The notes under the pieces were generated by a model. The model saw nothing but the letters and a program-made list of their open reading frames with translations. It had not been told where the DNA came from and ran no database searches. DNA of 64,000 bases from Amphiscolops sp. MND2022 (Eukaryota), in assembly GCA_964187785.1 (NCBI GenBank), contig OZ076415.1, positions 27,094,001 to 27,158,000 on the forward strand, written 5' to 3'. The position numbers and the translations under genes were made by a program. This document shows, piece by piece, positions 3,979 through 25,300 of the stretch. How positions within the stretch are numbered: the first letter of the stretch is position 1; every line of letters begins with the position of its first letter.

Positions 3979-4335
3979 TGACTTTACGAGGAATTCCCAT
4001 ACAGCAGACAGCAGAAATCTCATACAGCAGAAAATTAAAATTCGGTCCCATACTGCAGGATGTTTATTAATGCTGCAATCGGATTGGCTGAAATTTCAAA
4101 TGGAATCAAGTTCACTAGGCGCAAACGCGTGTCAGCTTTTGTCGGAGTTATTATTAACGTAGTCAACTATTTTCATATACTCCTAGTGCCCTAAATGCAG
4201 GAGCGGAGCGACGTACCAAATGGCTATGCCTCAATACATATTGGCTGTCTTAGAACTGAAATGTAGTAATTTCAATTCTGCTCTATGGGACCGAATTTTA
4301 ATTTTCTGGTGTTTGAATAGGCCCTGACTTTACGA
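3979..4335. repeat. Small element with a 25-bp inverted repeat, flanked by an 11-bp direct repeat
   Basis: CAGAAAATTAAAATTCGGTCCCATA (4028-4052) is the exact reverse complement of 4284-4308; TGACTTTACGA at 3979-3989 and 4325-4335. Confidence 0.55.
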
Positions 4336-7412: not shown

Positions 7413-10400
7413 CAACATAGTTTCATATTATGATATGAGTGTTCAAAACTCAAAACAAGGAACCAACTCCTGAAGTGCCGTTGCAAAATGCTCATGCAAA
7501 AAAGTGGCGAAGGACGATGACCATCAGGGATTGGATGCCATGGATGTGTGAAATAGTTTCATGGCCAATGTGTCTCACTCTCGGACAATGAAGTCAAATG
7601 GTTGGGCTCCAGAATGAGCTGCCTCTGGATGTGCGATGCCTGTCTTGAAAGCAACTCTCCGATCCTACCCGAAGCTTAGTCTCTTTCATTACGAAATGAT
7701 AACATAACGACCTATTTCAAATCCATCAGTGTTAAAATCGATTCTTTTCGTGAAGTTGTTTCGAAACAAAACTCCAAAAACTTGGCAGATTCTCCTGCTA
7801 ACAAATCTCAACTAAAAGTTGTTGTGGAAAAAAGTCGAGAGGAATCATTGCCAGAGGTTATGGCAAAATCTTTCAAAGACTCTTTTAATACGACTGTTTC
7901 GAATAATGATCGGCCTCAAAATATTGTATCCCCCAATGACCAATTTATTATCACTGGAGTACCCGGAGCCATAGGTCCCTTATCTGATCTCCACGAATCT
8001 GACTCCAGTCGTGTGAATAATATTATTAGTTTTCTGAATGAAAAGTCAGAGGGCAATATCAAATCCATTCGTCCACTCGGCAAAAGGAAAAACAAAACTG
8101 ATACCAAATTGTCCTCAAAATTGTGGCAAAGACCTTTACTGGTAACATGTGAAAATGACAGTGGTTGGTTTATGGAAAGATGCTTCCAAAAGAGCTACAA
8201 ACTCCAACAATTCTATTATCCTGTATAACTGAAAAAAAGTTTCTCCATTCAGCTGAGAGGTCACTTGAGGAAAAAGTTCTATGCAAACGTTATTTAATGA
8301 TCCATGGAGAAAACGCTAACAAGCATGACTTCAAAATCAAAAACTTGATTTTCTATTATAAAGAAAAAGAAGCTAAGATTATTGATAAATGACCTTCTGT
8401 CCTAAATGCCGCTGTCATAAACTGTCAATCTCTGAAAAATTCATCTAAACAACAAAAACTAAAGCGTCTAATCGTAGCCCATGATATCAAACTTTTACTT
8501 CGGTGCGAAACCTTTCTACATTCTGATATAAAGACCTCTGAAGTCATACAAGGTTCCTGTTTTAAAGAGATTGACCGTACTGATTGCAACAAAGGGGAAC
8601 ATGGTGGACTACTGATTGTTCCCAACCTATATTATCCAGCAAAATTTACTGATTTCTCAATTTTGAAATTCTGCAAATTTAGCTTGGGCTGTTTAGTCAC
8701 CTTTCGCAGTTCTTGTTCTATGTATGTATTAATCTACAACCCTCAATCAGGTTCACCATATAGAGAACCCTACTCATTAATAGTGGAATGTCTCCAGGTA
8801 TACATAAGCGAATTCCAAACTCTCTGCTCGGTAAATGGCATACAATAATTCTCTGACAACGTGCACTTTGTCGGTGATTTTAATTTTCCAGGAATTGACT
8901 GGAAAACCCTGAAGGGATCAACATCTCATGAAAATGAAGTCATTGTTTTTCTGTTAGATCTGCATCTAACGCAATTAGTTACGGAAAGGACTCATATAAA
9001 TGGCACCACCCTTGATCTTGTCTTTACAAATTGCCCTGAAACCTTTTATTTTGTCCATTCTGAAAAATTTTACCGATCGTTTTCCGCTAGTTGTTTACAC
9101 ACGGAAAAACTCCCTTGAAATGCTACAGTTTCTTCCAACTAGCAAACAATACAGTGGATCCTCTTTAAGTCTGACAATATTCAACGAGAATCCTAACCCA
9201 CTTTATTGTTTCCTTTCCAAATGTTTCGCTTTTCTGCTCAATTTTGTCGAGATGTGGTCATGAAAAAATCACTGTCAAAAAACGTAAAAAGTGCCAATTA
9301 TATCCATATTCCTTCTCATCTCATACTATCCACCTAGTATATTGTAAAAACACTTTACGAAAAAATTGGATAAAAATTTGAATTCCTCTTATGCAGCTCT
9401 TTTCAAAATCTGTGAACAAAATCTATCTCTCCCCATTGAATTAGATAAAGCTGCTTTCGTTGAAAACCTACATTTGAAAGATTCTAATCATTGTTTCAAG
9501 TTATTACGGTCTCTTAATGCAAAAAGAGGCTTACCACATACGCTCAAAACTGGTGATAATACATCAACTGACGATTTGTCGAAATGCAAACTGCTAAATA
9601 AATGTTTTGCCCCCGTTTTCAAACCAGCTACTCTGATAAACGTTGATGACATGGTATATCCTGAAAACGTTGAAATTCGTTGGACGACCTCGATATTAAA
9701 TTAGGAACTATCGTATCCCTCTGAACACTTGCTGACGACTCAACTGCTTGTGCTTCCGATGGCATTCCTTGTTTTGTGCTTAAACATACTGGCTATCTTT
9801 TTGCACCTGCAGTACAATATCTGTTTTTCTCAATCACTCAATCTTGTGGCTGGCCTTCTGAAAAGAAATTGGCTTGCATAACCCTCTGCATATGTCTGGA
9901 TCTATTTCTTGGGTTTCTAACTACCGGCCAATCAGCATTTTACCATGTGTTTCACTTAATCTAAAGAAAATACTTTTCGATCATATTTATCCTCGTGTCA
10001 GAGCTAAAAGCGTTGAATCACAATTCGGTTTTATGACTAAGGGAAATACAGTAACCCAACTGATTCACTATCTCGATGCCCTGTATGATTGTTTGGACCA
10101 AAACATCCCCTTTTCTTGTGTTTACTTCGATTTTGCTAAAGCTTTAGACATTGTGCCTCATGCTCTTCTCAACAAAAAGCTCCTGTCTTTCGGTTTCGAA
10201 CAAAATATCACAATGTTACTTGCCTCATATCTCTCGGACTGCCCATTATGTGTTCGCTCTGATGACATTAGCTCCAGCATTCTTCCCATAACTTCGGTAG
10301 TACCACAAAGCAGTACCGTGGGTCCCCTGTTGTTCCTCCTATTTATAAACGACTTACCCTCTGTTATTCAATACACATATGATTTTTTCTTTTCAGATGA

Positions 10401-11252
10401 CCTCAAACTGATCGCAATGCTACCCAACATTGAAACCCAAATGGATATCGACAGTCTACTACAATGGGCTGATGATAACGGAATGGAGTTTAATACTTCA
10501 AAGTTGAAGCTTTTTACCTGCTCAATTTCAAAGCAACCTTCGGCGTTACGCCTTGGAGAATACCTTGGAGAATTCGTTTCCGTTGATCAATTATTGGGTT
10601 TAGGTGTCCTGATACCATAAGATTTAAAATGGAAAGATCACATCTCAAAAGCAATCCAAAAAAAGGTCAAAACGTTTCTTTTTCTCAGACGTGTATTACC
10701 TCTAGTCCATCAACTGGAAAGAAGTTAAGGTTGTATGAAACGTTAGTTCTGAGTATCCTTTTATTTTCTTCACCTTGTTGGGCCCCTTGTTGTTTAAGAG
10801 TACAGTTTTTGGAAAACTTCCAGAAAAAAGTGCTTCAATGGATCTGTGCTGGCCTGGATTTTGAACGTACTTTGGGAAGATTGGATCTCCTTCCGATTTG
10901 TTATCAACTTGTTCGGGCCGATGTCATTCTTCTCTGGAAAAAAGTGAACAAACGTGTCGATTTCCATATTGCGATGCCTCTGAAGCAAAAATGTAATCCA
11001 ACCAGAAATTCACTTGATCTTTTTGAAATCAGCTACTCCTCAAAGTAGAAATCCATAGGAAAATTTTGTATTCGTGCTCCGTGGATAAGCAATGTGTTAC
11101 TTGCAGACGAAGTCATTGACTTTATTTGGCAGCGGTAAAAATTCAAACAAGCACTTTCTGAATATTTGAAACATCTGACTAGAACAAAGTTTAACTACAA
11201 CAACATGTGTACCTATCATGTGAAATGTAGATGTTCTTTGTGTCATTCCTGA
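7413..11252 (+). mobile_element. Degenerate CR1/L2-type LINE (PHD ORF1; APE endonuclease + RT ORF2)
   Basis: ORF1 PHD remnant IGCHGC..FHGQCVSL..WMCDAC (~7480-7650); APE motifs VGDFNFPGIDW and THINGTTLDLVFTN (8861-9100); RT YRPISIL, QFGF, YFDFAKALDIVPH, VPQSSTVGPLLFLLFINDLP, FSDD (9874-10620); Cys-rich end CTYHVKCRCSLCHS* at 11252. Confidence 0.9.
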
Positions 11253-13499
11253 TATCGTATTTCTTTTCTAAATATATATATCTTTCAAACATGTAAATGC
11301 ATCATTCATACGTATTGTTGTTTACGCTTCCTGTCTTCAGCGAATTGAGTCTTTTACTACTACTAATTCGGTTTTACACAACAAAAGCATCGTCTTGCCA
11401 CCTTTATTGTGTGAGGTAAATTACCCAGCGTTCCTTTATTGTAAGGACTTTTATGAAAAGACACCCAGACACACTTTATAATACTTGAAAAGAGTTCCTA
11501 AAACTTCACGGATCCTCCTAGCTGAAAACTTCATACCCAAAACTAATAATATTTGTGAAACCCCGTTAAATATTGCCTTGTGGTGCTTACTGTTCTCCTT
11601 TCTAAGGTATTTTTTGGAGAAACTGCTTCGAGGAGGGCAACTTCAGCGGTCATCACTTAGTGCAATTATCAACAAGCGTATTCGGGATGATGTCATTGAG
11701 AAAAAACCGAAACGCTACAGAAAACAGCAGGAGAAAAGCGAGTTAGATTGACGACTGCGTTCCATTTGCACTAAATTAGACGAAGGTAATGTTAAGGCCG
11801 GAATCAGAATGGCAGTCGGCGACGACAAGATTGCAGATTTCACGGTCGACAACTACGCTGCCCTTAAGCTGAAACATCCGCAGAGGGGAACTTGCTCTGT
11901 TCCGGACCCCACAGATATCGATTGTGTTTCAACCTCGGAGTTTTTGTCCACAAGGCTCTCATGTCCTTCCCCAACGGCTCTAGTGCAGGGTTGGATGGCA
12001 TTTCGCCCCAAACTTTGAAAGATTTGACTGCCAAGTCGAACGGGCAAACTGGACCGAATTTTCTCAGAGTCTTAACAAATCTTGTGAATGTGATTCTCGA
12101 AGGAAAAGTACCTTTTGAACTTCGGCCGTACTTCTTTGGTGCGAAACTGATTGCGCTAAAAAACTCCAATGGAGGACTTCGTCCTCTCGCTATAGGCAAT
12201 ACTTTCCGCCGATTGTCCGCAAAATGTGCCGGATACCATGTCTTCGAATCACGTCAAGCAAGATATGGAAAATCGACAAGAAGGTGTAGGTACCAAAAGG
12301 GGCGCTTAATTGGCCTCACATGTTTTCTGTTGTTTGATAGAAAGCCCTCAGCCCAAAGAAAACGTAATTTTGAAAATTGACTTCGAGAACGCTTTCAATT
12401 CGATAAACCGGCAATTCATGCTAGAGAAAGTTTTTGAAAAACACCCTGAAGTTTTTAAAGATTCACACTCGGCCTACAGTTAGCCAAGTTTTCTTTTTTT
12501 ACGGTGATTCAGTACTCAAATCTTGTGAAGGGACCCAGCAAGGAGACCCTGAGTCTCCAGTTTTGTTTTCGGATTCCATTCAGGATCTGATTGACAGTTT
12601 GGAGTCGAAAATAAACTTATGATACCTAGACGATGGAAATTTAAGTGATGATTACCGAACTGTTTTGAAAGATCCCAAAAAAATTGTTGATGCGGAAAGA
12701 ACGCTGGGACTCAAATTTAAACCCACGAATTGTGAATTTTTTTCCCTGGTGACATCATTGAAAAACGACGATCGACTACTTTAGATTTTTTCCAAAAACG
12801 TTGCCCCGGGATCGAAACACCAAAGAAAGATAAACTTATCATTCTTGGTTCACCGCTCGGCCCGAAATCACAAGCAGACTTATTGGAAAGGAAAATAATG
12901 AACTGGACAAAGTTAAAGGGATTGTTGAAAAACTAGATGCGCACTATGTTGAAAAATAGCTTCAGTTTGCCAAAGTTGTTGTACTTCCTGAGAACCAGTA
13001 CATGTTTTAATCATCCAGCTCTCTTGGAGAAAAATGGCAAAACCGTGCGCGACAAACTTTCCAAACTTTGTAACGTGAACGTCGACGATATTCCGAGTAC
13101 TCTGCTGGCTCTGCCCACTAACATGGGTGGTCTTAGGGTGTCAACCGCATCATTCGTAGCACTTCCCTCTTTTTTGGCCTCATGTTTTGGTGCGAGTGTG
13201 ACTTTCTCACGACGACTTTCTCGGAAACATTCGAAGATGTTTCGTTTACAAAAGCGCTTGAGAAAGGTTGAGTTTGACGAGTGAACAGGAATGTCCTCTC
13301 GGTGGAACCCAAAAAAAAATTGGACACAACCTGTCTTCGTCAGAAATGCCCAAGAGTTGATTTCTAGAAAGGATGACAGACGTTCGATAGTTTTCAACGC
13401 TCACCAAGGTCAATTCGGGTCTCAATGGCTGAACGTCGTTCCTTGCAAGAACAAAGGCCTGAAACTTGAAGATCAGCAACTTCGAGTTTCAATTGGTTT

Positions 13500-13848
13500 G
13501 GGTGGCTTCAAATAGGTCTAATTTTTCTGGTAGAAAGGACATAGGTCGAACCTTTTGATCGAATTGCAGGGATTGAATGGAATGCGGTCGAATTTTATCG
13601 TATTTGTTGTATGGCACGGTCGCTTCGCTCCCTTCGCCAAGTAGCAACATCGAGGTATGGCCATATGGCACGTCGCTCCGCTTCGCTTCGCTCCTGCATT
13701 CAGGGTACTAGGGGTATGTTAACATATCTGACCAGGTTATAAAAATTTCGATCCGAGTTGTTTCGATCCTATTCAAAAATTTGGTATGTCTACCTGAGAA
13801 TTAACTCTGATTTTCGATCCTGTTCCTTCGACCTATTTCCGCCCACCC
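13500..13848. mobile_element. Mutator-like MITE (GGGTGG TIR family), inside CRE copy 1
   Basis: Imperfect 19-bp TIR GGGTGGCTTCAAATAGGTC / GACCTATTTCCGCCCACCC; interrupts ISIGL..GANIC coding; homologous to 21541-21890. Confidence 0.85.
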
Positions 13849-14610
13849 GGTGCCAACATCTGCGTAGGGCATACGTGCCACTGTGGTAAAAGTTGAACGG
13901 GACGGTTTACACGGTCTTTCTTGCACCAAGAGTGCTGGTCGCTTCTCACGTCATGCTATTCTCAATCCTCTCATGAAGCAGTCGTTGGGATCTCTGGACT
14001 TGCCTTCAATGCTCGAACCGCGTGGACTGCACCGAATTGATGGCAAACGCCCAGACGGTGTTACCATGGTTCCTTGGGAAATGGGTAAACAGCTGGTGTG
14101 GAATGTCACGGTTGTGGATGGATGCTCTTGCACCCAGTCGCCTGAATCAAGGCTCTTTATGCAACCCGGGAACCACCGCCACCGAGGCTGAAGCGCGTAA
14201 AATGGAGAAGTATCGCGAATTAATTGACTATGGATACATTTTTTAGCCGGTGGCCTTGGAAGTACAGGGTTCTTTAGGCGAGAGCAGTGAAATTTTCATC
14301 ACGCGTCTCTGTGAAATGCTCTGTCGTTTGCACGACGATCAACAAGCTGGCAATGGCTCCTCAGATCGGCAGTGCGGCCTGTGTTCTAGGAACTGTGAGC
14401 GACAGAGTTGCGTTCGAAGAAATTTATTACATATAGCCTAATTTTTTTGACCTTTATATCAAAGCAGCTCTAAAAAAAATTCCATCGGTTGACTGCATAG
14501 TGGCTGGTTTGAGTAGTTTGTTGGTTGTTTTTTTTTGTTACTGGTATAGTGGCTGGTATGGCGTTCCCTACTTTCGTTGCAGACCACGGGTGTGTGTCTT
14601 CTTCCCCAAC

Positions 14611-14660
14611 ATGATGATACACATGGCACTTGATTGATGACGAAGATCCATGATATCTGA
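14611..14660 (+). ncRNA. C/D-box (snoRNA-like) module, type A
   Basis: Box C ATGATGA 14611-17, D' TTGA 14630-33, C' TTGATGA 14634-40, box D CTGA 14657-60; weak TTCC/GGAA terminal stem. Confidence 0.4.
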
Positions 14661-14676
14661 TAGAGGAAAAAAAACC

Positions 14677-15335
14677 TTTATGGAAATGCACCTTACCTTA
14701 TCACCCAGCTATGGAAAAGGCGCCGACTAAAAATAGAAAATACTGATTCATTTCATCTTCATGGCATAGTTTTTCGAGTACGTGGAATATTTAATGTTCG
14801 CTTCACTACTTTCAGAATCTGATGTTGGTTGAAGTGTATTCATGTGGTCAGAGAGTATGAAATCGTAGTGTTCTCACTGATGGCTTACGTTTTGTTGAGA
14901 CTATGGAGCTATTTTTCTGGTCGAGGTTGGTTGTAAATTTTGAATGTCATACGGTCCTATGCTCACAGCGTATCACATTCTTTTCTGAAATGGTTGCTTT
15001 GTTGAGGACATTACGTGGTAATTCAAATAGCTGAAAATGAAAAGTTATCAAACAGCAAACAATTTTTATCGGGCCTAGTGATAAGCTGGAATTCGATGTC
15101 GCGGATATTGTCAAAATTTTTACTGAAACGTCGGCTATGTTCACGTACCCCTGAAGCGCAAAGTCGAAATTCCGAAAAGCGAATTCCAGAAACTTCGAAT
15201 CATGAAATATGGTGCTCGTCTGGCAATACATTGCTAATCATGTTATTCAGTTACAGCAATTAGAATTGAATCATTTGACGACAGATTGCAATTTCAATGC
15301 GCTACTTTTCTGAATTATTTTCTCTCTATTCACGA
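14677..15335 (+). repeat. Near-identical duplicate of the ARL5 upstream region, exon 1 and start of intron 1 (22159-22817)
   Basis: Direct alignment by eye shows only scattered substitutions over ~660 bp. Confidence 0.95.
14880..14925 (+). pseudogene. ARL5: Duplicated ARL5 exon 1 ([15 protein letters not shown]; G2A and S6L)
   Basis: ATGGCTTACGTTTTGTTGAGA... versus ATGGGTTACGTTTTGTCGAGA...; donor G|GTTGGT intact; not followed locally by exon 2. Confidence 0.8.
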
Positions 15336-16422
15336 CGCTCAAATTTAAAAAGTTTTTGAAAAACACCCTGAAGTTTTTAAAGATTCACACTCGGACTACA
15401 GTTAGCCAAGTTTTCTTTTTTTTTACGGTGATTCAGTACTCAAATCTTGTGAAGGGACCCAGCAAGGAGACCCTGAGTCTCCAGTTTTGTTTTCGGATTC
15501 CATTCAGGATCTGATTGACAGTTTGGAGTCGAAAATAAACTTATGATACCTAGACAATGGAAATTTAAGTGATGATTACCGAACTGTTTTGAAAGATCCC
15601 AAAAAAATTGTTGAAGCGGAAAGAACGCTGGGACACAAATTTAAACCCACGAATTGTGAATTTTTCTCCCGGGTGACATCACTGAAAAACGACGATCGAC
15701 TAATTTAGAATTTTTCCAAAAACGTTTCCCCGGGATCGAAACACCAAAGAAAGATAAACTTATCATTCTTGGTTCACCGCTCGGCCTGAAATCACAAGCA
15801 GACTTATTGGAAAAGAAAATAATGAACTGGACAAAGTTAAAGGGATTGTTGAAAAACTAGATGCGCACTATGTTGAAAAATTGCTTCAGTTTGCCATAGT
15901 TGTTGTACTTCCTGAGAACCAGTACATGTTTTAATCATCCAGCTCTCTTGGAGAGAAATGGCAAAACCGTGCGCGACAAACTTTCCAAACTTTGTAACGT
16001 GAACGTCGACGATATTCCGAGTACTCTGCTGGCTCTGCCCACTAACATGGGTGGTCTTAGGGTGTCAACCGCATCATTCGTAGCACTTCCCGCCTTTTTG
16101 GCCTCAGGTTTTGGTGCGAGTGTGACTTTCTCACGACGATTTTCTCGGAAACATTCGAAGATGTTTCGTTTACAAAAGCGCTTGAGAAATGGTTGAGTTT
16201 GACGCGTGAACAGGAATGTCCTCTCGGTGGAACCCAAAAAAATTGGACACAACCTGTCTTCGTCAGAAATGCCCAAGAGTTGATTTCTAGAAAGGATGAC
16301 AGACGTTCGATAGTTTTCAACGCTCACCAAGGTCAATTCGGGTCTCAATGGCTGAACGTCGTTCCTTGCAAGAACATAGGCCTGAAACTTGATGATCAGC
16401 AACTTCGAATTTCAATTGGTTT

Positions 16423-16771
16423 GGGTGGCTTCAAATAGGTCTAATTTTTCTGGTAGAAAGAACATAGGTCGAACCTTTTGATCGAACTGCAGGGATTGAA
16501 TGGAATGCGGTCGAATTTTATCGTATTTGTTGTATGGCACGGTCGCTTCGCTCCCTTCGCCAAGTAGCAACATCGAGGTATGGCCATATGGCACGTCGCT
16601 CCGCTTCGCTTCGCTCCTACATTCAGGGTACTAGGGGTATGTTAACATATCTGACTACGTTATAAAAATTTCGATCCGAGTTGTTTCGATCCTATTCAAA
16701 AATTTGGTATGTCTACCTGAGAATTAACTCTGATTTTCGATCCTGTTCCTTCGACCTATTTCCGCCCACCC
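16423..16771. mobile_element. Mutator-like MITE (GGGTGG TIR family), inside CRE copy 2
   Basis: Near-identical to 13500-13848 at the same position. Confidence 0.85.
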
Positions 16772-17532
16772 GGTGCCAACATCTGCGTAGGGCATACGTG
16801 CCACTGTGGTAAAAGTTGAACGGGACGGTTTACACGGTCTTTCTTGCACCAAGAGTGCTGGTCGCTTCTCACGTCATGCTATTCTCAATTCTCTCATGAA
16901 GCAGTCGTTGGGATCTCTGGACTTGCCTTCAATGCTCGAACCGCGTGGACTGCACCGAATTGATGGCAAAAGCCCAGACGGTGTTACCATGATTCCTTGG
17001 GAAATGGGTAAACAGCTGGTGTGGAATGTCACGGTTGTGGATGGATGCTCTTGCACCCAGTCGCTTGAATCAATGCTCTTTATGCAACCCGGTAACCACC
17101 GCCACCGAGGCTGAAGCGCGTAAAAAGGAGAAGTATCGCAAATTAATTGACTATGGGTACATTTTTTAGCCGGTGGCCTTGGAAGTACAGAGTTCTTTAG
17201 GCGAGAGCAGTGAAATTTTCATCACGCGTCTCTTTAAAATGCTCTGTCGTTCGCACGACGATCAACAAGCTGGCAATGGTTCCTCAGATCGGCAGTGCGG
17301 CCTGTGTTCTAGGAACTGTGAGCGACAGAGATGCGTTCGAAGAAATTTATTACATATAGCCTAATTTTTTTGACCTTTATATCAAAGCAGCTTTAAAAAA
17401 AGTTCCACCGGTCGACTGCATAGTGGCTGGTTTGAGTAGTTTGTTGGTTGTTTTTTTGTTACTGGTATAGTGGCTGGTATGGGGTTCCCTACTTTCGTTG
17501 CAGACCACGGGTGTGTGTCTTCTTCCCCCAAC

Positions 17533-17582
17533 ATGATGATGCACATGGCACTTGATTGATGACAAAGATCCATGATATCTGA
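17533..17582 (+). ncRNA. C/D-box module, type A (duplicate)
   Basis: ATGATGA 17533-39 ... TTGATTGATGA ... CTGA 17579-82. Confidence 0.4.
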
Positions 17583-18077
17583 TAGAGGAAAAAAACCTTA
17601 ATGGAAATCTGCCACTGTGGTAAAAGTAGCCTAATTGTTGTGATGGACTTGTTGAATGGCTTCAGAGATGGCAATGATTTGAATTTGAGACAACTGGACA
17701 ACATCTCTGACGCTGTTTTGTTGGCTTGTCGCTGCACTTGGGCTGAAAGATCTATCACAACCCGGTAAGATAGTTCTATTTGTATTTCATTTAGTCAAAT
17801 TGAGGCTCAGCGTTTCTACCGGTCTACTGGGATAGTGGCTGGTATGAGTAGTTTTTTGGCGTTTTTTTTAAATGTTATATTTCATTAATTTTAATTTTAA
17901 CTTATCTTTTTAACAAATCAAGTCTCCAGATTTTTCGATGGCTTTAGAAACCCCCAGCCCGGTTTTCCCTTGTTTTTCTCCATCCTCGTTTTTGGTCGTT
18001 TTGTCTCCCCTCTGAAAATGAGCATTGTAACACGTGTCGTGTGCAGTGCCTGAACCATAAATCGTAGGCTCTGAAAA

Positions 18078-21000
18078 ATGTCCCGGAGAGGAATCAATAA
18101 GTTCTGCTCCGCCCAAAAATGTTGTAAACCCTCTGGCAGAATTTTCTGGGTAGGATGTTCAAAATGCCGTAAATGGTTCCATATCAAGTGTGTGGGTAAT
18201 ACAAAAAAGCAGTCGGAGGAGGAAGATTTTTTCTGCAGACCTTGTCAAGTTGTGGATACGGGTGCTCCACTGCCGCTTACTGTTGATACTCTAATAGCTG
18301 TCACTAAAGCAAACCCCACCATTCTAAAACGAGTACCCAAACACGCACGCATTCCATTAGCGAAGCTTCTCAATGAAGCGCTTGATGGCATAGTAGCAAA
18401 GCCACACGATAAATCGTGCTGGGTGAGTTTCTTTTTTCAATTTTGCGCTATTATGAAACAACCAAACGATCTGGCAAACGACAGAAATCTGATCTGGGGA
18501 GTATCATATGCGAGAGAATCAACAAAGGTGCAGCTCTTGGCGATCTTGTCGTCCCGCGTGAAGTGAAGGACTCTAAACTCGAGCAAGAATGCGAAAAAAG
18601 GATCAAGTTGATCTCCGCCAAGCTCGATGAGGGGAACGTCCGAGCGGGAATAAGACTAGCAGCGTCTGACGACTCAGTAATTCTTGACAACAACACTTAC
18701 GAAAAACTTCAGTCGAAACATCCTCTCGAGCCCCAAATCATGCCCAACAAAATGCCGAAGATAGCCTAATTACGTTTGAACCCATCGTAGCGAAGGCAAT
18801 CAACTCCTTCCCTTCTGGGTCTTCGGGAGGACCAAGCCTACTTGTGCCCCAGTTGTACAAAGACCTTATCGCGAAGAGCAACGGGTCCGTAGGAAACGAG
18901 TTTCTCCAGAAGCTAACAAGCGTACTAAATATTGTCTTGGAAGGCAAAGTCCCTGTAGGTTTGAGACCTTTTTTCTTTGGTGCTAAACTTATCGGTCTTC
19001 GGAAAAAAGACGGCGGAATTCGACCAATTGCTGTTGGAAATACCCTGCGTCGAATATGCTCGAAATGTGTGAGCTCTTTCGCGACTGACCAACGACGAAT
19101 TGATTTCCATGGTACGCAGTTTGGCTGCGGAACAAGTCGTGGAGCTGAAATCGCTGCACATGTTTTTCGAAACCTCATTGAGAACGAGCAGAATCCTGAA
19201 AACGTTATTCTAAAGATGGACTTCAAAAATGCTTTTAACTCGCTGAAACGTGACAAAATCTTAGACACCGTTTTCCGAAACGACGCCAGATTTACAATTA
19301 TACGCACTCTGCATATAGCGAATCCTCACATCTTTTCTTCGGAGAGAAAGTTATTCAATCGCAAGAGGGCTGTCAGCAAGGGGACCCTGAAGGCCCAGCT
19401 CTCTTCTCCGACACTATTCAAGACCTCGTTAACCAAATGGTTTCACAATATAATGTTTGGTACCTCGACGACGGAAACATTTCGGATGACTATCGGAAGG
19501 TTCTTGAGGACCTCAAACGAATCATCGCTAGCGCCGACGAGTATGGGTTATCACTCGAGAAAACTAAATGTTACCTGATTTTCCTTAGAAATTGTACCGA
19601 AAGTTCAAAAAAAAGAATCAAAACGCTTTTTGACGAAATTTTCCCGGGTATTAAAGTGGAGGATCGTGAGAATTTGGAAATTTTAGGGTCGCCAATGAGC
19701 GCAAGTACTCGACGAGACCTGTTGAACAAAAAAATGATTGAATTGCAAAAAAATATCTGAAGTCGTTACGAAATTAGATGCCCACTATAGTTTCTACTTG
19801 TTGAAGAACTGCTTTAGTCTACCTAAACTAGTCTACTTTCTTCGTACCAGCCCTTGCTTTGAAGAGGTGGACCTCCTACAGCAGTATGATTCCATTATCC
19901 GCAAATCATTGTCCAAAATCTGCAATGTGAATTTTGATGAAAGCAGCTATACTCAAGCGATTCTCTCAGTCTCCAAAGGGGGCATAGGCATTGCATCGGC
20001 TTCCCAGATTGCTCTTCCTGCTTTTTTAGCTTCAGCATCGGGTGCCAAACGTGCTTTGTCGTGTATCCTCCCGGAAGACTATGTTGATGCATCGTTTGAA
20101 AAGGCTCTGGATTTATGGTTGGCGAGGGCGAACCTGACAGAAGCACCGTCGGACTCCATTCAAAAACATTGGACCTCTCCTCTGAGCGATGCTACTTTTG
20201 ATCAACTTATTACAGACCTTGATGCGGAAAATGTCAAAAGGCTGAATGCTTATCAAGACCACTTTGGTTCAGCTTGGCTGAATGTTGTACCAAGCAAAAA
20301 CCTCGGTCTGAAGTTGACAGATCAGCAACTGCGCATCTCCTTATCCCTCCGCCTGGGATCGAAAATTTGCGAGAAACACATTTGCCGCTGCGGTAAACTT
20401 GTCGAAGAGAACGGACATCAGTGCCAGAAGCGCGGGACTTTTCTCGAGGCATCACAACCTCAACTCTCGTGAAACAGGCGCTGAGTTCCATCAAAGTTCC
20501 CTCAATTTTGGAACCATATGGTCTGACCCGAACAGATGGAAAGCGCCCAGATGGAATTACCCTAGCGCCCTGGGAGGTAAATGGTCACTTGGCTTAATGC
20601 CATTTGGCTTAAAGTCATTTGGCTTAATACAATTGGTCACTTGGCTTAAGTTTTTTAAGCTAAGTGTCTCGGGTATTGGTCACTTGGCTTAAAGTCATTT
20701 GACTTAAAACCACTTAGTTGAAAACACGTGACAGATTTTCTCGAATTTATCTTTATAACGGAATCAGCGTATTAATTTAACATGTCATATCAAGTACCCC
20801 TCGGATATGTCCCCATTTCCTCTAGTGCCCTGCGGCCCCTTGGGGCCGCTTATATTCCCATCTTGCTAAGCGAGGTCGAACAGGAGCAAAGACCTAGCGG
20901 GAACGAAGATCGCGAAGCGATCGTAGTGGGAGCTGGTCTTTGCGACGGTGAGGGCGAGCGTGCATACACCGCATATGCCGCACATTATGGTATTTCCGGG

Positions 21001-21514
21001 AGTTGACATATTTATTCCTCGAGTTGGAACGGAGTTGGCTTAATTTTGTGGTCACTTGGCTTAAAATTTTTAAGCCAAATGACTCGACGAAAAAATTAAG
21101 CCAAATGGTATTAAGCCAAGTGACTGGTAACCCCCTGGGAGTAAGGCAAGCAATTAGTCTGAGATGTTACTTGTGTCGATCTCCTTGCCCCCAGTAGAAT
21201 AGAGAACGGGTCTGTTGCCAACCCAGGCACAGCAGCGGAGGATGCAGAGGAATTGAAAACGGCTAAGTACGTTTGTTTGACTGACAAAGGATACATCTTC
21301 CAACCTTTAGCCTTTGAAATTCAGGGAGGAGTCGGACCTTCTACGTCTACCTTCTTCAAAAACCTCTGTAAAAAGTTGTGCGTGTGCAATCAAGAAAATA
21401 GAGCCGGGTCCTTTTTCAGGCAGAGACTCTCTCGCAATCCAGGTAGGCAATGCGGCCAGTGTAGTTGGAACGGTTCGGGACGAAGACCACTTAAGCGAAC
21501 TTTACTACTTGTAA
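18078..21514 (+). mobile_element. Near full-length CRE-like RLE non-LTR retrotransposon, copy 3 (PHD-RT-CCHC-RLE), frameshifted
   Basis: PHD CSAQKC..WVGCSKCRKWFHIKCVG..FFCRPC; FFGAKLIGLRKKDGGIRPIAVGNTLRR; MDFKNAFNS; QQGDP; WYLDDG; LKNCFSLPKL; HICRCGK; KRPDGITLAPWE; YIFQPLAFE. Confidence 0.92.
20576..21132. mobile_element. Foldback/Mutator-like MITE with TTGGCTTAA repeat arms
   Basis: TIR GGTAAATGGTCACTTGGCTTAAT / ATTAAGCCAAGTGACTGGTAACC; TSD CCCTGGGA(G) at 20568-75 and 21133-40; removing it rejoins LAPWE with GKQLV*DVTCVD; contains the 180-bp core at 20800-20979. Confidence 0.92.
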
Positions 21515-21540
21515 ATCCGCGTTTTAATGTCTTAATGTCC

Positions 21541-21890
21541 GGGTGGCTGTAAATAGGTCGAATTTTTCTGGTCGAAAGGACAGAGGTCGAACCTTTTGAT
21601 CGAATTGCAGGGATCGAATGGAATGCGGTCGAATTTTATCGTATTTGTTGTATGGCTCGGTCGCTTCGCTCCCTTCGCCAAGTAGCAACATTGAGGCATG
21701 GCCATATGGCACGTCGCTCCGCTTCGCTTCGCTCCTGCATTCAGGGCACTAGGGGTATGTGAACATATCTGACTACGTTATAAAAATTTCGATCCGAGTT
21801 GTTTCGATCCCATTCAAAAAATTTGGTTTGTCGACGTGAGGACTAACTCTGATTTTCGATCCCGTTCCTTCGACCTACTTCCGCCCACCC
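21541..21890. mobile_element. Mutator-like MITE (GGGTGG TIR family) with 9-bp TSD
   Basis: TSD TTAATGTCC at 21532-40 and 21891-99; TIR GGGTGGCTGTAAATAGGTCGAA / TTCGACCTACTTCCGCCCACCC. Confidence 0.93.
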
Positions 21891-22089
21891 TTAATGTCCG
21901 TTTTGTTTCATTAAGAAATATATGTCTTCTTTGCTTCGTAATCGTTACCAGTTCACATGCCTCTTTGAGTTTCTGGATTGAAGTTCCTCCTGGGTCCTTT
22001 GAACTCTCTGGTTGCATGATCTTTTCCTTATTTTTTTATGTCTCCTATGTTGGTTGGATTTTTTTGTCTGCCGCCCGGGCTGGGGGCAC

Positions 22090-22149
22090 ATGATGAATAC
22101 AGAAGCGTTTTTTAAGAAACGCTGATTGATGACGACGATCCAATTCTGA
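22090..22149 (+). ncRNA. C/D-box (snoRNA-like) module, type B
   Basis: Box C ATGATGA 22090-96, D' CTGA 22122-25, C' TTGATGA 22126-32, box D CTGA 22146-49, terminal stem GGCA/TGCC. Confidence 0.5.
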
Positions 22150-22361
22150 TTGCCTATTTTTATGGAAATGCACCTTACCTTATCACCCAGCTATGGAAAA
22201 GGCGCCGACTAAAAATAGAAAATACTGATTCATTTCATCTTCATGGCATAGTTTTTCGAGTACGTGGAATATTTAATGTTGGCTTCACTACTTTCAGAAT
22301 CTGATGTTGGTTGAAGTGTATTCATGTGGTCAGAGAGTATGAAATCGTAGTGTTCTCACTG

Positions 22362-25300
22362 ATGGGTTACGTTTTGTCGAGACTATGGAGCTATTTTTCT
22401 GGTCGAGGTTGGTTGTAAATTTTGAATGTCATACGGTCCTATGCTCACAGCGTATCACATTCTTTTCTGAAATGGTTGCTTTGTTGAGGACATTACGTGG
22501 TAATTCAAATAGCTGAAAATGAAAAGTTATCAAACAGCAAACAATTTTTATCGGGCCTACTGATAAGCTGGAATTCGATGTCGCGGATATTGTCAAAATT
22601 TTTACTGAAACGTCGGCTATGTTCACGTACCCCTGAAGCGCAAAGTCGAAATTCCGAAAAGCGAATTCCAGAAACTTCGAATCATGAAATATGGTGCTCG
22701 TCTGACAATACATTGCTAATCATGTTATTCAGTTCCAGCAATTAGAATTGAATCATTTGACGACAGATTGCAATTTCAATGCGCTATTTTTCTGAATTAT
22801 TTTCTCTCTATTCACGAGGCAATTCTCTCTATTCAAATTTATGCAAATAGTTGTTTGCCTGTGTTGAGTGCTTTCTCTGTTTCAGAGTACAAAGTAATCA
22901 TCGTTGGACTAGATAACGCTGGTAAAACAACCATTCTTTACCAACTGTGAGTATGTTTAATTTCTAATTTGTCGAGCAATGCTTTTCCATTCGATCAATG
23001 AAAGATCGTACAGTCAACTTTGGGTGTGTTCACGTTTTTATGCACATTTTTGAGTGCAAATTTTTTCAATCAATGGAGCGGTAGTAAATGCTTTTTATTT
23101 CTCGGTATGCACAAAAGGTACGACGATTGAACCACGTGAATACTAATTAATCTCACGATTTTGTATTCGATATCTGAAGAGCATCCAAATGGTTCCTTTG
23201 AATATTTTATATTTTTATTAGGATAACAAAACAAAAAAATAGATAAGGTCTTTATCTTTGGCTGAAAGGGTCTCGTTTCAGATATTTTTCGGCCATACGT
23301 TTTTTCAGATTTCCCTCAAAAACAGATTGATCATTTCCATAAGACTTAGCTTTTTTGACGCTGAAGCGGGGCGGGCTTTGACGTTCTGTTCTCCGCTTGT
23401 TGAAACTTGTTGACTACTTTATTCGTCTCTGCAGCTTTTAATTTAAAAAAGTCAGGTGTCTCATTAGGCGGTTCCTTTTTGATTGACCGTTTACTTTCGA
23501 ACCGTTTTTTGCTTTAAGCAAAGAATTTTTTCGTCCAAATAAGTTACGAAGAATTGTTTACATTCGTTATTTAAATGCTGTTGTTCATGTGTAAGGGAAG
23601 AGGGCACGCCCTTTGAAGTTGGGTCTGTCTTTAATTTCATTGTTTGTCATTTACTGTGACAGTTTTCATTTTTCGAAGGGAGAGTTGCAATACATGAGTA
23701 GTCAAGTTCAATTGATAAAGTCCTCGAAAATTCGACAAGTTGATTGAATATTCGAAGGCTATTTTGATCCTCAATTCAACTTTCCGGATTATTATTGTCA
23801 AGATGTTTCATGATTTGAAATTATCAATATTGAATTGTCATTTGTCTAAGAGATCACTACTTAACGAAGAACGTCTAGTTGGTGTGTTATTCTTTATACA
23901 CTCCCTTATGTTCAGTGTGAACCAAGTTCAAATAACCAAGTTCAGTGAGGTTCAAGGTAATATGGAACTGATTCATTACACAGATCGCTGCTACACAACG
24001 GATTCATTTTCCAATAGTGTTTTTGTTCAGATATTTTGATTGTGACATCTACTATGACATCATTTTTGGTTACCTTTACAATTGTTCATCGGTTGAACTA
24101 AGAAACTATCTGTCGCTATTTTTTTCAAAATCGATTTTTCCAGCCTTGAGATATTTTTTTCACAATTTTTTGATGTTTCAGAAGGATTCCCTTTCTAATT
24201 AATGCCCTTTTCATTCATTCCGGATTTTTCTCGAACCATATTTTTCTCCAAAACAAGCCTTGAGCATTGTCTAAAGACATGGCACTTTTAAAGCCTTAGG
24301 GCGGTCACCAACATGGTACGTTCCTAGCTTGTTTAAATCAAGTAGGTTTTGTTTTGGTTCACTGGATTTTGCTGTTGAGACTGTTGTTTCTTAGGCTTAT
24401 GAACGAAGTTGTTCACACGTCTCCCACGATTGGAAGCAATGTTGAAGAAATAACTTGGAAGAATGTGCACTTCATCATGTGGGATATAGGTTGGTGACTT
24501 ACATTTTTTTATCTTGACCTGTCTGGAGATAATTTTTAACACCTGGTGTCCACTAAGATAACATCAGTCCAAAAGTGTACTTTTGCACCAGGTTTTAGAA
24601 TTTTCAAATTGGGGGCGACCCGTATCGAGAGCACCAGTTGAAACTTTGAAAGTAGGAAAACTGCTAATTTTTCCGGTTGTGATATCAATTCGTTTCTTAC
24701 ATTTTATTATCAGTATTTATTTTTTAAATGTCGATCATTTCCAAAAGCAATGAAAATTTCAATTTCTTGGTAATTTATTTGAATAACAATTTTTCGATGC
24801 TTATATAGAACGCCTTGATAAAACTTTTAAACGATGCAACACTGGTTCGAGTGATTTTTTTTCAACGACGCTTTAGACCTTAAGCAGACCCCCCACTTAG
24901 AGTAGAATTTCTTTTGATTCGTTCAAAATTTTCAATTCAATATTCTTGATGCTATAAGGTATGCTCTGTTCCATCGGTTGATAGCTAGCATCGGGTGATA
25001 ACTCACGTTGAGAACTTGTTTTTCCAGGAGGTCAAGAATCCCTTCGACAGAGTTGGAGCACTTACTACGCCAACACAGATTTTGTAGTTCTTGTTGTGGA
25101 CAGCAGTGACAGAGATCGACTTGCTGTTACCAAAGAAGAGTTCTATCGCATGCTAGCTCACGATGTAAGTACTACATTCAGTTGTCTTCTTCCAACTCAC
25201 ATAAAACCAGAATCGAGTTATCGAAAAGAAATTTTTGTTTGCATTGTTTCACAGCTTTGTGAACAGTTAACACTGGGCGCAATTGAACCAGTTCGAAATG

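Follow-up and report, generated by a model that had tools for sequence, protein, structure and literature searches.

A box C/D-like module at the 3' terminus of two non-LTR retrotransposon families in Amphiscolops sp.

A stretch of 64,000 nucleotides from Amphiscolops sp. MND2022 (assembly GCA_964187785.1, contig OZ076415.1, positions 27,094,001 to 27,158,000; hereafter the window) contains three copies of retrotransposons that lack long terminal repeats (non-LTR) and are of the restriction-like endonuclease (RLE) type, two of a family that we call type A and one of a related family, type B. Each copy ends in a short sequence that resembles a box C/D small nucleolar RNA (snoRNA). An earlier reading of the window, made from its letters and open reading frames (ORFs) and called here the sequence-only reading, had proposed two models for this module: the retroelements carry it in their 3' untranslated region (UTR), or they insert site-specifically just upstream of paralogous snoRNA genes. 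We find that the module forms the 3' terminus of one of two non-LTR families in all copies examined, and is not a host snoRNA gene. Its boxes are conserved between both families, and it may form a C/D-type kink-turn.

The module is the 3' end of the elements

Within the 1.07-Gb genome, the 20-nt core of the module occurs 3,051 times with up to 2 mismatches, compared to 3 times for the reversed control, and a B-specific 27-mer occurs 381 times. Element membership and terminal position are established by 87 non-redundant copies, all of which (87/87) have the module behind the 3' UTR of their own family, followed by unrelated DNA. In truncated copies with both junctions visible, the target-site duplications (TSDs) are 6-11 bp long, are unrelated between copies and lie outside the module, demonstrating that the module travels with the element, the check that the sequence-only reading had asked for. 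Where the C-terminal frame is open, 194-247 nt separate the end of the conserved C-terminal protein match from the start of the module core. Module-only copies are rare (1/71 for B, 2/52 for A), showing no excess of the kind that retroposition of a free small RNA would be expected to produce.

Site-specific insertion upstream of paralogous host snoRNA genes, with the module being host DNA, would fit the window taken alone, where TT(T/A)ATGGAAAT follows all three copies and had been counted as part of the module. What follows the tail in 87 other copies is unrelated sequence; the shared motif in the window arises because of one 11-bp TSD and a tandem duplication. The unrelated flanks and TSDs refute this model, to which we attach practically no probability, and support the first one, in which the module is part of the retroelements' own 3' UTR.

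The layout of the window was resolved by self-comparison (self-BLAST). Positions 12427-14687 are 97.4% identical to 15349-17608, and 14677-15335 are 98.9% identical to 22159-22817. A unit comprising the type A 3' part and a host flank (flank F) has been duplicated in tandem, and the second unit was later split by a type B element of 4.55 kb, which inserted at the junction between A and F. This insertion is bordered by an 11-bp TSD (left TTAATGGAAAT, right TTTATGGAAAT, with one mismatch between them), the uninterrupted target site of which is present at 14677-14687. The alignment of both type A copies continues 11 nt beyond the tail, into the flank. Copy 1 of type A is degenerate; its remaining frames are listed with the other features in Table 1. 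In all, the rearranged stretch (duplication, then type B insertion) covers window positions 12427-22830.

Table 1. Positions of elements, modules, boxes and coding frames in the window
Feature	Position	Strand	Basis or remark
Type A RLE non-LTR element, copy 1	11892-14676	+	ORFs, self-BLAST, homology to type B frames and RLE-element proteins
Type A copy 1, reverse transcriptase (RT) N-terminal frame	11892-12380
Type A copy 1, CCHC/RLE frames	13883-14246
Type A 3' module, copy 1	14605-14674	+	Pattern search; sub-threshold Rfam C/D matches
Flank F, host sequence	14677-15335	+	98.9% identical to 22159-22817
Type A copy 2	15349-17597	+	DNA-level tandem duplicate of 12427-14676, 97.4% identity
Type A 3' module, copy 2	17527-17595	+	Pattern search
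Left TSD of type B insertion (TTAATGGAAAT)	17598-17608	+	Matches 22159-22169, one mismatch
Type B RLE non-LTR element, copy 3	17609-22158	+	ORFs, domain matches, self-comparison
Type B, PHD finger frame (N-terminal)	18078-18566		PHD finger E=4.6e-6
Type B, RT frames	18844-19760		RVT_1 E=3.1e-7
Type B, thumb/CCHC frame	19738-20472
Type B, C-terminal frame	21253-21552
Type B 3' module	22085-22156	+	Pattern search; sub-threshold Rfam C/D matches
Right TSD of type B insertion (TTTATGGAAAT)	22159-22169	+	Self-comparison; also first bases of flank F'
Flank F', second copy of duplicated host segment	22159-22817	+	Self-comparison
Box C, ATGATGA (A copy 1; A copy 2; B)	14611-14617; 17533-17539; 22090-22096
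Core (A copy 1; A copy 2; B)	14630-14650; 17552-17572; 22122-22142		Pattern search
Box D, CTGA (A copy 1; A copy 2; B)	14657-14660; 17579-17582; 22146-22149
D' (A copy 1, D'-like TTGA; A copy 2, TTGA; B, CTGA)	14630-14633; 17552-17555; 22122-22125
C' (A copy 1, TGATGA; A copy 2; B, TGATGA)	14635-14640; 17557-17562; 22127-22132
Alternative C' register, ATGACGA (A copy 1)	14637-14643
GATCCA (A copy 1; A copy 2; B)	14645-14650; 17567-17572; 22137-22142
Tail (A copy 1, TAGAGG + A8; A copy 2)	14661-14674; 17583-17595
Stem I arms (B, 5' GGCA; 3' TGCC)	22085-22088; 22151-22154
Internal hairpin (B)	22104-22123
Element end, TA (B)	22155-22156

The copies differ in how precisely they end. At loci where the C-terminal frame is intact, type B copies stop precisely at ...CUGAUUGCCUA, two bases past the terminal stem and without poly(A), and young B copies all end ...CTGATTGCCTA. 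The ends of other A and B copies are ragged just past box D: they lie 0-10 nt beyond it, and 5-9 A-rich bases often precede the TSD. In one copy (L019), UUGCCU stands before the CAGAG tail known from other B copies, which suggests, from few copies, that the arm of the terminal stem was inserted into an older tail.

Several loci show other arrangements. Three type B copies with intact C-terminal frames, at C8:44.71 Mb and at C9:43.84 and 43.88 Mb (L145, L161 and L165), are cut within the 3' UTR and continue directly into a microsatellite, (AAGTTG)3 or (TAC)n, instead of the module. A and B copies are often nested in, or adjoin, each other's tails (L168 and L169 at C8:56.11 Mb; L047; L052); one B copy ends right before box C of an A copy, and in the window the B element likewise lies directly behind an A tail. 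Three loci (L001, L002 and L007) that appeared to hold a short interspersed element (SINE) sharing the tail were rejected as such, being type A modules split by a terminal inverted repeat (TIR) element of approximately 370 nt with 9-10-bp TSDs. A tail in common with a non-autonomous SINE partner was not found, these split modules being the only other module context. The TIR element (inverted repeats GGGTGGC...GCCCACCC) has inserted at least twice independently within type A modules, at the TGATGA-containing sites TTGATTGATG and ACATGATGA (C1:40923-46578 and C1:3385000-3388019; L001:1500 region, L002 and L007).

Box conservation and pairing

In all three modules, a box C near the 5' end and a box D near the 3' end enclose a core of the form (C/T)TGATTGATGAC(G/A)A(A/C)GATCCA, for which a pattern search gives 3 matches in the window versus 0.01 expected. 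Boxes and core are thus found where the sequence-only reading had located its motif (14611-60, 17533-82 and 22090-149), and the GGCA/TGCC terminal stem that it described for type B is present as well. At the RNA level, the exact AUGAUGA and CUGA are found in both A and B and are kept in the 29 A and 31 B copies that could be parsed. They are identical in A and in B copies with different tail forms.

The 3' UTRs of A (249 nt) and B (270 nt) have only four collinear islands in common: GTTGGTTG..TTTTTTTGT, ACATGATGA(W)ACA, the D'/C' core and TCTGAT. Of these, three are made up of the boxes plus one flanking base on each side. The sequence-only reading had called the downstream sequences otherwise unalignable, but they have one further short collinear block (20 nt at 90%). 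A column-conservation profile was also computed over the last 300 nt, in which the core is biased by the way the copies were selected.

In a kink-turn reading of the module, stem I is closed by the A and U that flank the boxes; box C contributes G6, paired with C1 of box D, and A7, paired with U, the base that precedes box D. The two pairs of stem II after these are U-A and A-U in type A versus A-U and U-A in type B, followed by a mismatch in both. The predicted 4-bp stem II beside boxes C and D is thus kept by two double compensatory changes, as seen in a comparison of two lineages only. In type B, stem I has 5 bp (A-U, C-G, G-C, G-C, G.U) in 65-81% of copies.

Searched against Rfam in E-value mode, every weak match on the + strand inside the modules is to a C/D family, and almost all extend over the full length of both model and module. 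The type A module scores best against sR5 (21 bits with a cut-off of 40, E=0.003), with sub-threshold C/D matches covering 14607-14662, and the type B module against sR35 (18 bits with a cut-off of 60, E=0.011), with sub-threshold C/D matches covering 22081-22158. Further weak matches of the type B module are snoR16, SNORD19B and SNORD5.

Possible roles of the module

We propose that the module, as the 3'-terminal 55-75 nt of the transcripts of the related families A and B, acts in cis as an element 3'-end module. Boxes C and D, the conserved A-U closing pair, stem I and the 4-bp stem II could fold into a box C/D-type kink-turn, which would nucleate a ribonucleoprotein (RNP) containing host Snu13 (perhaps joined by other C/D core proteins) and/or a protein of the element itself. 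This RNP would halt 3'-to-5' trimming a few bases past box D, giving a defined 3' end without poly(A) that could be offered to the RT for target-primed reverse transcription. The ragged ends just past box D would fit trimming to a protein-protected boundary. We give an even chance, or slightly less, to the view that a C/D-type kink-turn RNP forms and sets or shields the 3' end of the RNA. The stronger proposal, that the RNA of an autonomous retrotransposon ends in a genuine box C/D snoRNP and borrows host snoRNP assembly to obtain a non-polyadenylated 3' end for target-primed reverse transcription, is tentative, and we lean against it in this full form.

A number of observations weigh against a C/D-type RNP. 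There is no Rfam match at gathering score in the window (0 matches). The terminal stem of type A is interrupted (A-U, A/A mismatch, C-G, C/A mismatch, C-G, C-G), its D' is UUGA, and the D'-C' spacing of 1-3 nt is tight for a K-loop. The Rfam models ease the caveat of the sequence-only reading, which had counted 0-1 nt here, by placing C' as AUGACGA, 3 bases after D', but this C' is imperfect. Minimum free energy folds of the modules are no better than those of shuffled sequences (z from -1.3 to +1.9). In type A, conservation between copies reaches approximately 60 nt upstream of box C, and therefore the recognised region may be larger than the module. An imprecise RLE-type RT would equally be expected to leave ragged ends and extra bases. 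Approximately 29% of the B copies with intact C-terminal frames are without the module and have other endpoints, some in microsatellites; either the elements do not strictly need the tail or rearrangement has affected these copies. Finally, the core motif is absent from elements of other organisms that are approximately 45% identical (80 metagenome loci). Their 38 kb of downstream sequence gave one C/D-like match versus one on the control strand, i.e., no excess. With no such tail in these relatives, the module is specific to the A/B lineage.

The tail could, alternatively, be recognised solely by the element's own RT, as in R2 and "stringent" long interspersed elements (LINEs), with no host snoRNP protein taking part; the likeness to C/D RNAs would then be a by-product of a GAT-rich tail (GAT approximately 5 times in 35 nt). 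The sub-gathering Rfam scores, the lack of stem I in type A, the non-significant folds, guide matches to ribosomal RNA (rRNA) at chance level (see below), and the conservation that extends upstream of the type A module, together with the second conserved island GTTGGTTG..TTTTTTTGT, all favour this explanation. However, it does not account for the coincidence of the conserved islands with exact RUGAUGA and CUGA boxes and the flanking A...U pair, for the double compensatory changes in stem II, for the canonical terminal stem of the youngest B lineage, which ends two bases after it, or for full-length C/D model matches at E=0.003 and 0.011. We regard recognition by the RT alone as a serious possibility, albeit one we would expect to be wrong. 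Of the original C/D interpretation, the boxes as conserved islands with compensatory pairs and the weak Rfam matches, all to C/D families, stand, while a gathering-level match is missing; it is plausible and unproven.

Could the module also guide rRNA methylation? The guide regions match host 18S, 5.8S and 28S rRNA no better than shuffled guides: the best duplexes have 8-11 bp (those of 11 bp include 4-5 G.U pairs), and 65-100 of 100 shuffled guides are as good. An antisense stretch of at least 10 nt before D or D' that pairs by the fifth-nucleotide rule, typical for C/D snoRNAs, was not found for these rRNAs. The earlier idea that GATCCA is complementary to UGGAUC of 5.8S rRNA fails likewise, the host 5.8S reading GGGAUC. 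We conclude that the module does not guide rRNA methylation, a working methylation guide being highly improbable.

One specific version of this idea has the module as a captured host snoRNA of the SNORD19 family, still guiding 18S 2'-O-methylation at the equivalent of human G683, the position guided by SNORD19 (PMC6984369). Type B has GAUCCAAUU right before box D, and the Rfam SNORD19B consensus has GAUCCAACU in the same register; host 18S AGUUGGAUC pairs with this guide over 9 bp with one G.U, which is its best rRNA match. Against this, 72 of 100 shuffled guides reach 9 bp or better, and the SNORD19B match is at 15 bits versus a cut-off of 50 (E=6), which falls short of similarity at the family level beyond the boxes; only the 9-nt guide and box D agree. 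In type A, the spacing differs by 3 nt and the pairing is 7 bp only, not adjoining box D. A search for a separate host snoRNA gene with this guide (a SNORD19 orthologue or parental gene) found none. A captured, still functional SNORD19 is therefore very unlikely; the register in which the type B guide matches 18S hints that a SNORD19-like snoRNA was its source.

One rDNA unit of the host (C6:29048000-29067999) is odd. Its small-subunit match is only 1,434 nt long (L040:2767-4200), without most of the 5' domain, and its 5.8S is divergent. The large-subunit match spans 7.6 kb for a 3.4-kb model (L041:790-8405), with a tRNA match overlapping its 3' end, and contains an RT-like stretch (L041:5298-5900) with 29% identity to an RLE-element RT. 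This may be an rDNA copy interrupted by insertions.

Element proteins, relatives and known systems

Over the C-terminal 328 residues, A and B are 57.6% identical in protein sequence, below the approximately 63% given by the sequence-only reading. Besides the frames listed in Table 1, type B has a C-terminal region with a CCHC motif and an RLE of the type C.CG...H...C...RPDG...D, which is also present in thousands of public proteins of about 900-1,100 residues. Similarity of the RT to solved R2 proteins is weak (E about 1e-5). A profile search of the genome with the C-terminal domain gave about 6,100 candidate places. Of the top 30 matches, which were fetched, 27 were readable in frame, and all of these (27/27) are A or B, with open frames of up to 961 residues; the families have therefore been recently active.

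As for relatives, three transcript-like contigs stop before the element 3' ends, and a further look gave only A and B copies of the same species. In the low-coverage sequencing run of a second organism, window positions 21923-22021 of the type B 3' UTR are found at 97% identity in a contig that diverges at 22021; no contig of this run covers the module. Contig depth falls at the element end.

Foreign repeats lie inside type B copy 3, around 20700-21250 and at 21541-21890. The latter is a block of approximately 350 nt in the type B 3' UTR that is 94% identical to 13500-13848 in the CCHC-coding region of type A. We rejected it as a sign of A/B homology; it is a foreign repeat inserted in both elements. 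The repeat, which is also found at 16423-16771, has a very high copy number, with a contig depth 10-100x that of the A/B elements, and part of it recurs inverted at 4142-4211. Directly upstream of type A copy 1, at 7782-11048, is a different non-LTR element, with a likely AP (apurinic/apyrimidinic)-endonuclease frame at approximately 8861-9118 and an RVT_1 domain at 9874-10620 (E=3.7e-19).

With respect to classification, the description of the elements as CRE-like is valid only when the term is taken loosely, for any non-LTR element of the RLE type. Like the site-specific RLE-type elements CRE/SLACS, NeSL, Utopia and R2, they have a single ORF with RT, CCHC and C-terminal RLE. Unlike them, A and B have dispersed sites and variable TSDs of 6-11 bp, and type B has an N-terminal PHD finger. 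The insertion into spliced-leader RNA genes that marks the CRE clade was not seen among the copies, which are dispersed and have unrelated flanks and TSDs.

The R2 3' UTR and "stringent" LINEs such as eel UnaL2 have conserved 3' tails that are recognised in cis by their RT. Like these, the A/B module is a short stretch of RNA at the very 3' end of the element that related families have kept while the remainder of their 3' UTRs diverges, and most copies have it, as reverse transcription starts there. It differs in what is conserved, namely exact C, D, C' and D' boxes whose pairing is compatible with a kink-turn; moreover, no SINE partner with the A/B tail was found, and some copies have no tail. 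Even if no C/D RNP is formed, A and B have a clear short 3' recognition module that is kept between families only 58% identical in protein, and such tails could be mistaken for snoRNA genes or retroposed snoRNAs during annotation.

Mammalian snoRTs, reportedly described by Weber in 2006, are retroposed snoRNAs, as are the snoRTE elements of platypus. In all of these, a C/D-type RNA is multiplied to high copy by LINE machinery. In the snoRTs and snoRTE, the snoRNA comes from the host and is either copied in trans or joined to the 5' side of a LINE tail, whereas in A and B the snoRNA-like unit itself is the 3' terminus of an autonomous element, without a parental host gene having been found and with the module rarely occurring alone. 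The open-access literature, which does contain retroposed snoRNAs, yielded no autonomous element that ends in a C/D-like unit. If the tail is a C/D unit, the approximately 3,000 copies would constitute a reservoir of orphan C/D units seeded genome-wide, including in host introns, where processing could occur and snoRNA-like RNAs could be released.

The 3' ends of sno-lncRNAs, of SPA RNAs and of vertebrate telomerase RNA, with its H/ACA domain, are set by snoRNP assembly. To our knowledge, a snoRNP-defined 3' end is not known for a retrotransposon. The logic proposed for A and B would be the same, with a snoRNP that blocks exonucleases giving a stable 3' end without poly(A), and telomerase RNA is likewise the template for an RT. 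Should the A/B tail assemble a C/D RNP, it would represent a new solution to the 3'-end problem of retrotransposons, parallel to the H/ACA domain of telomerase RNA and to snoRNP-capped lncRNAs.

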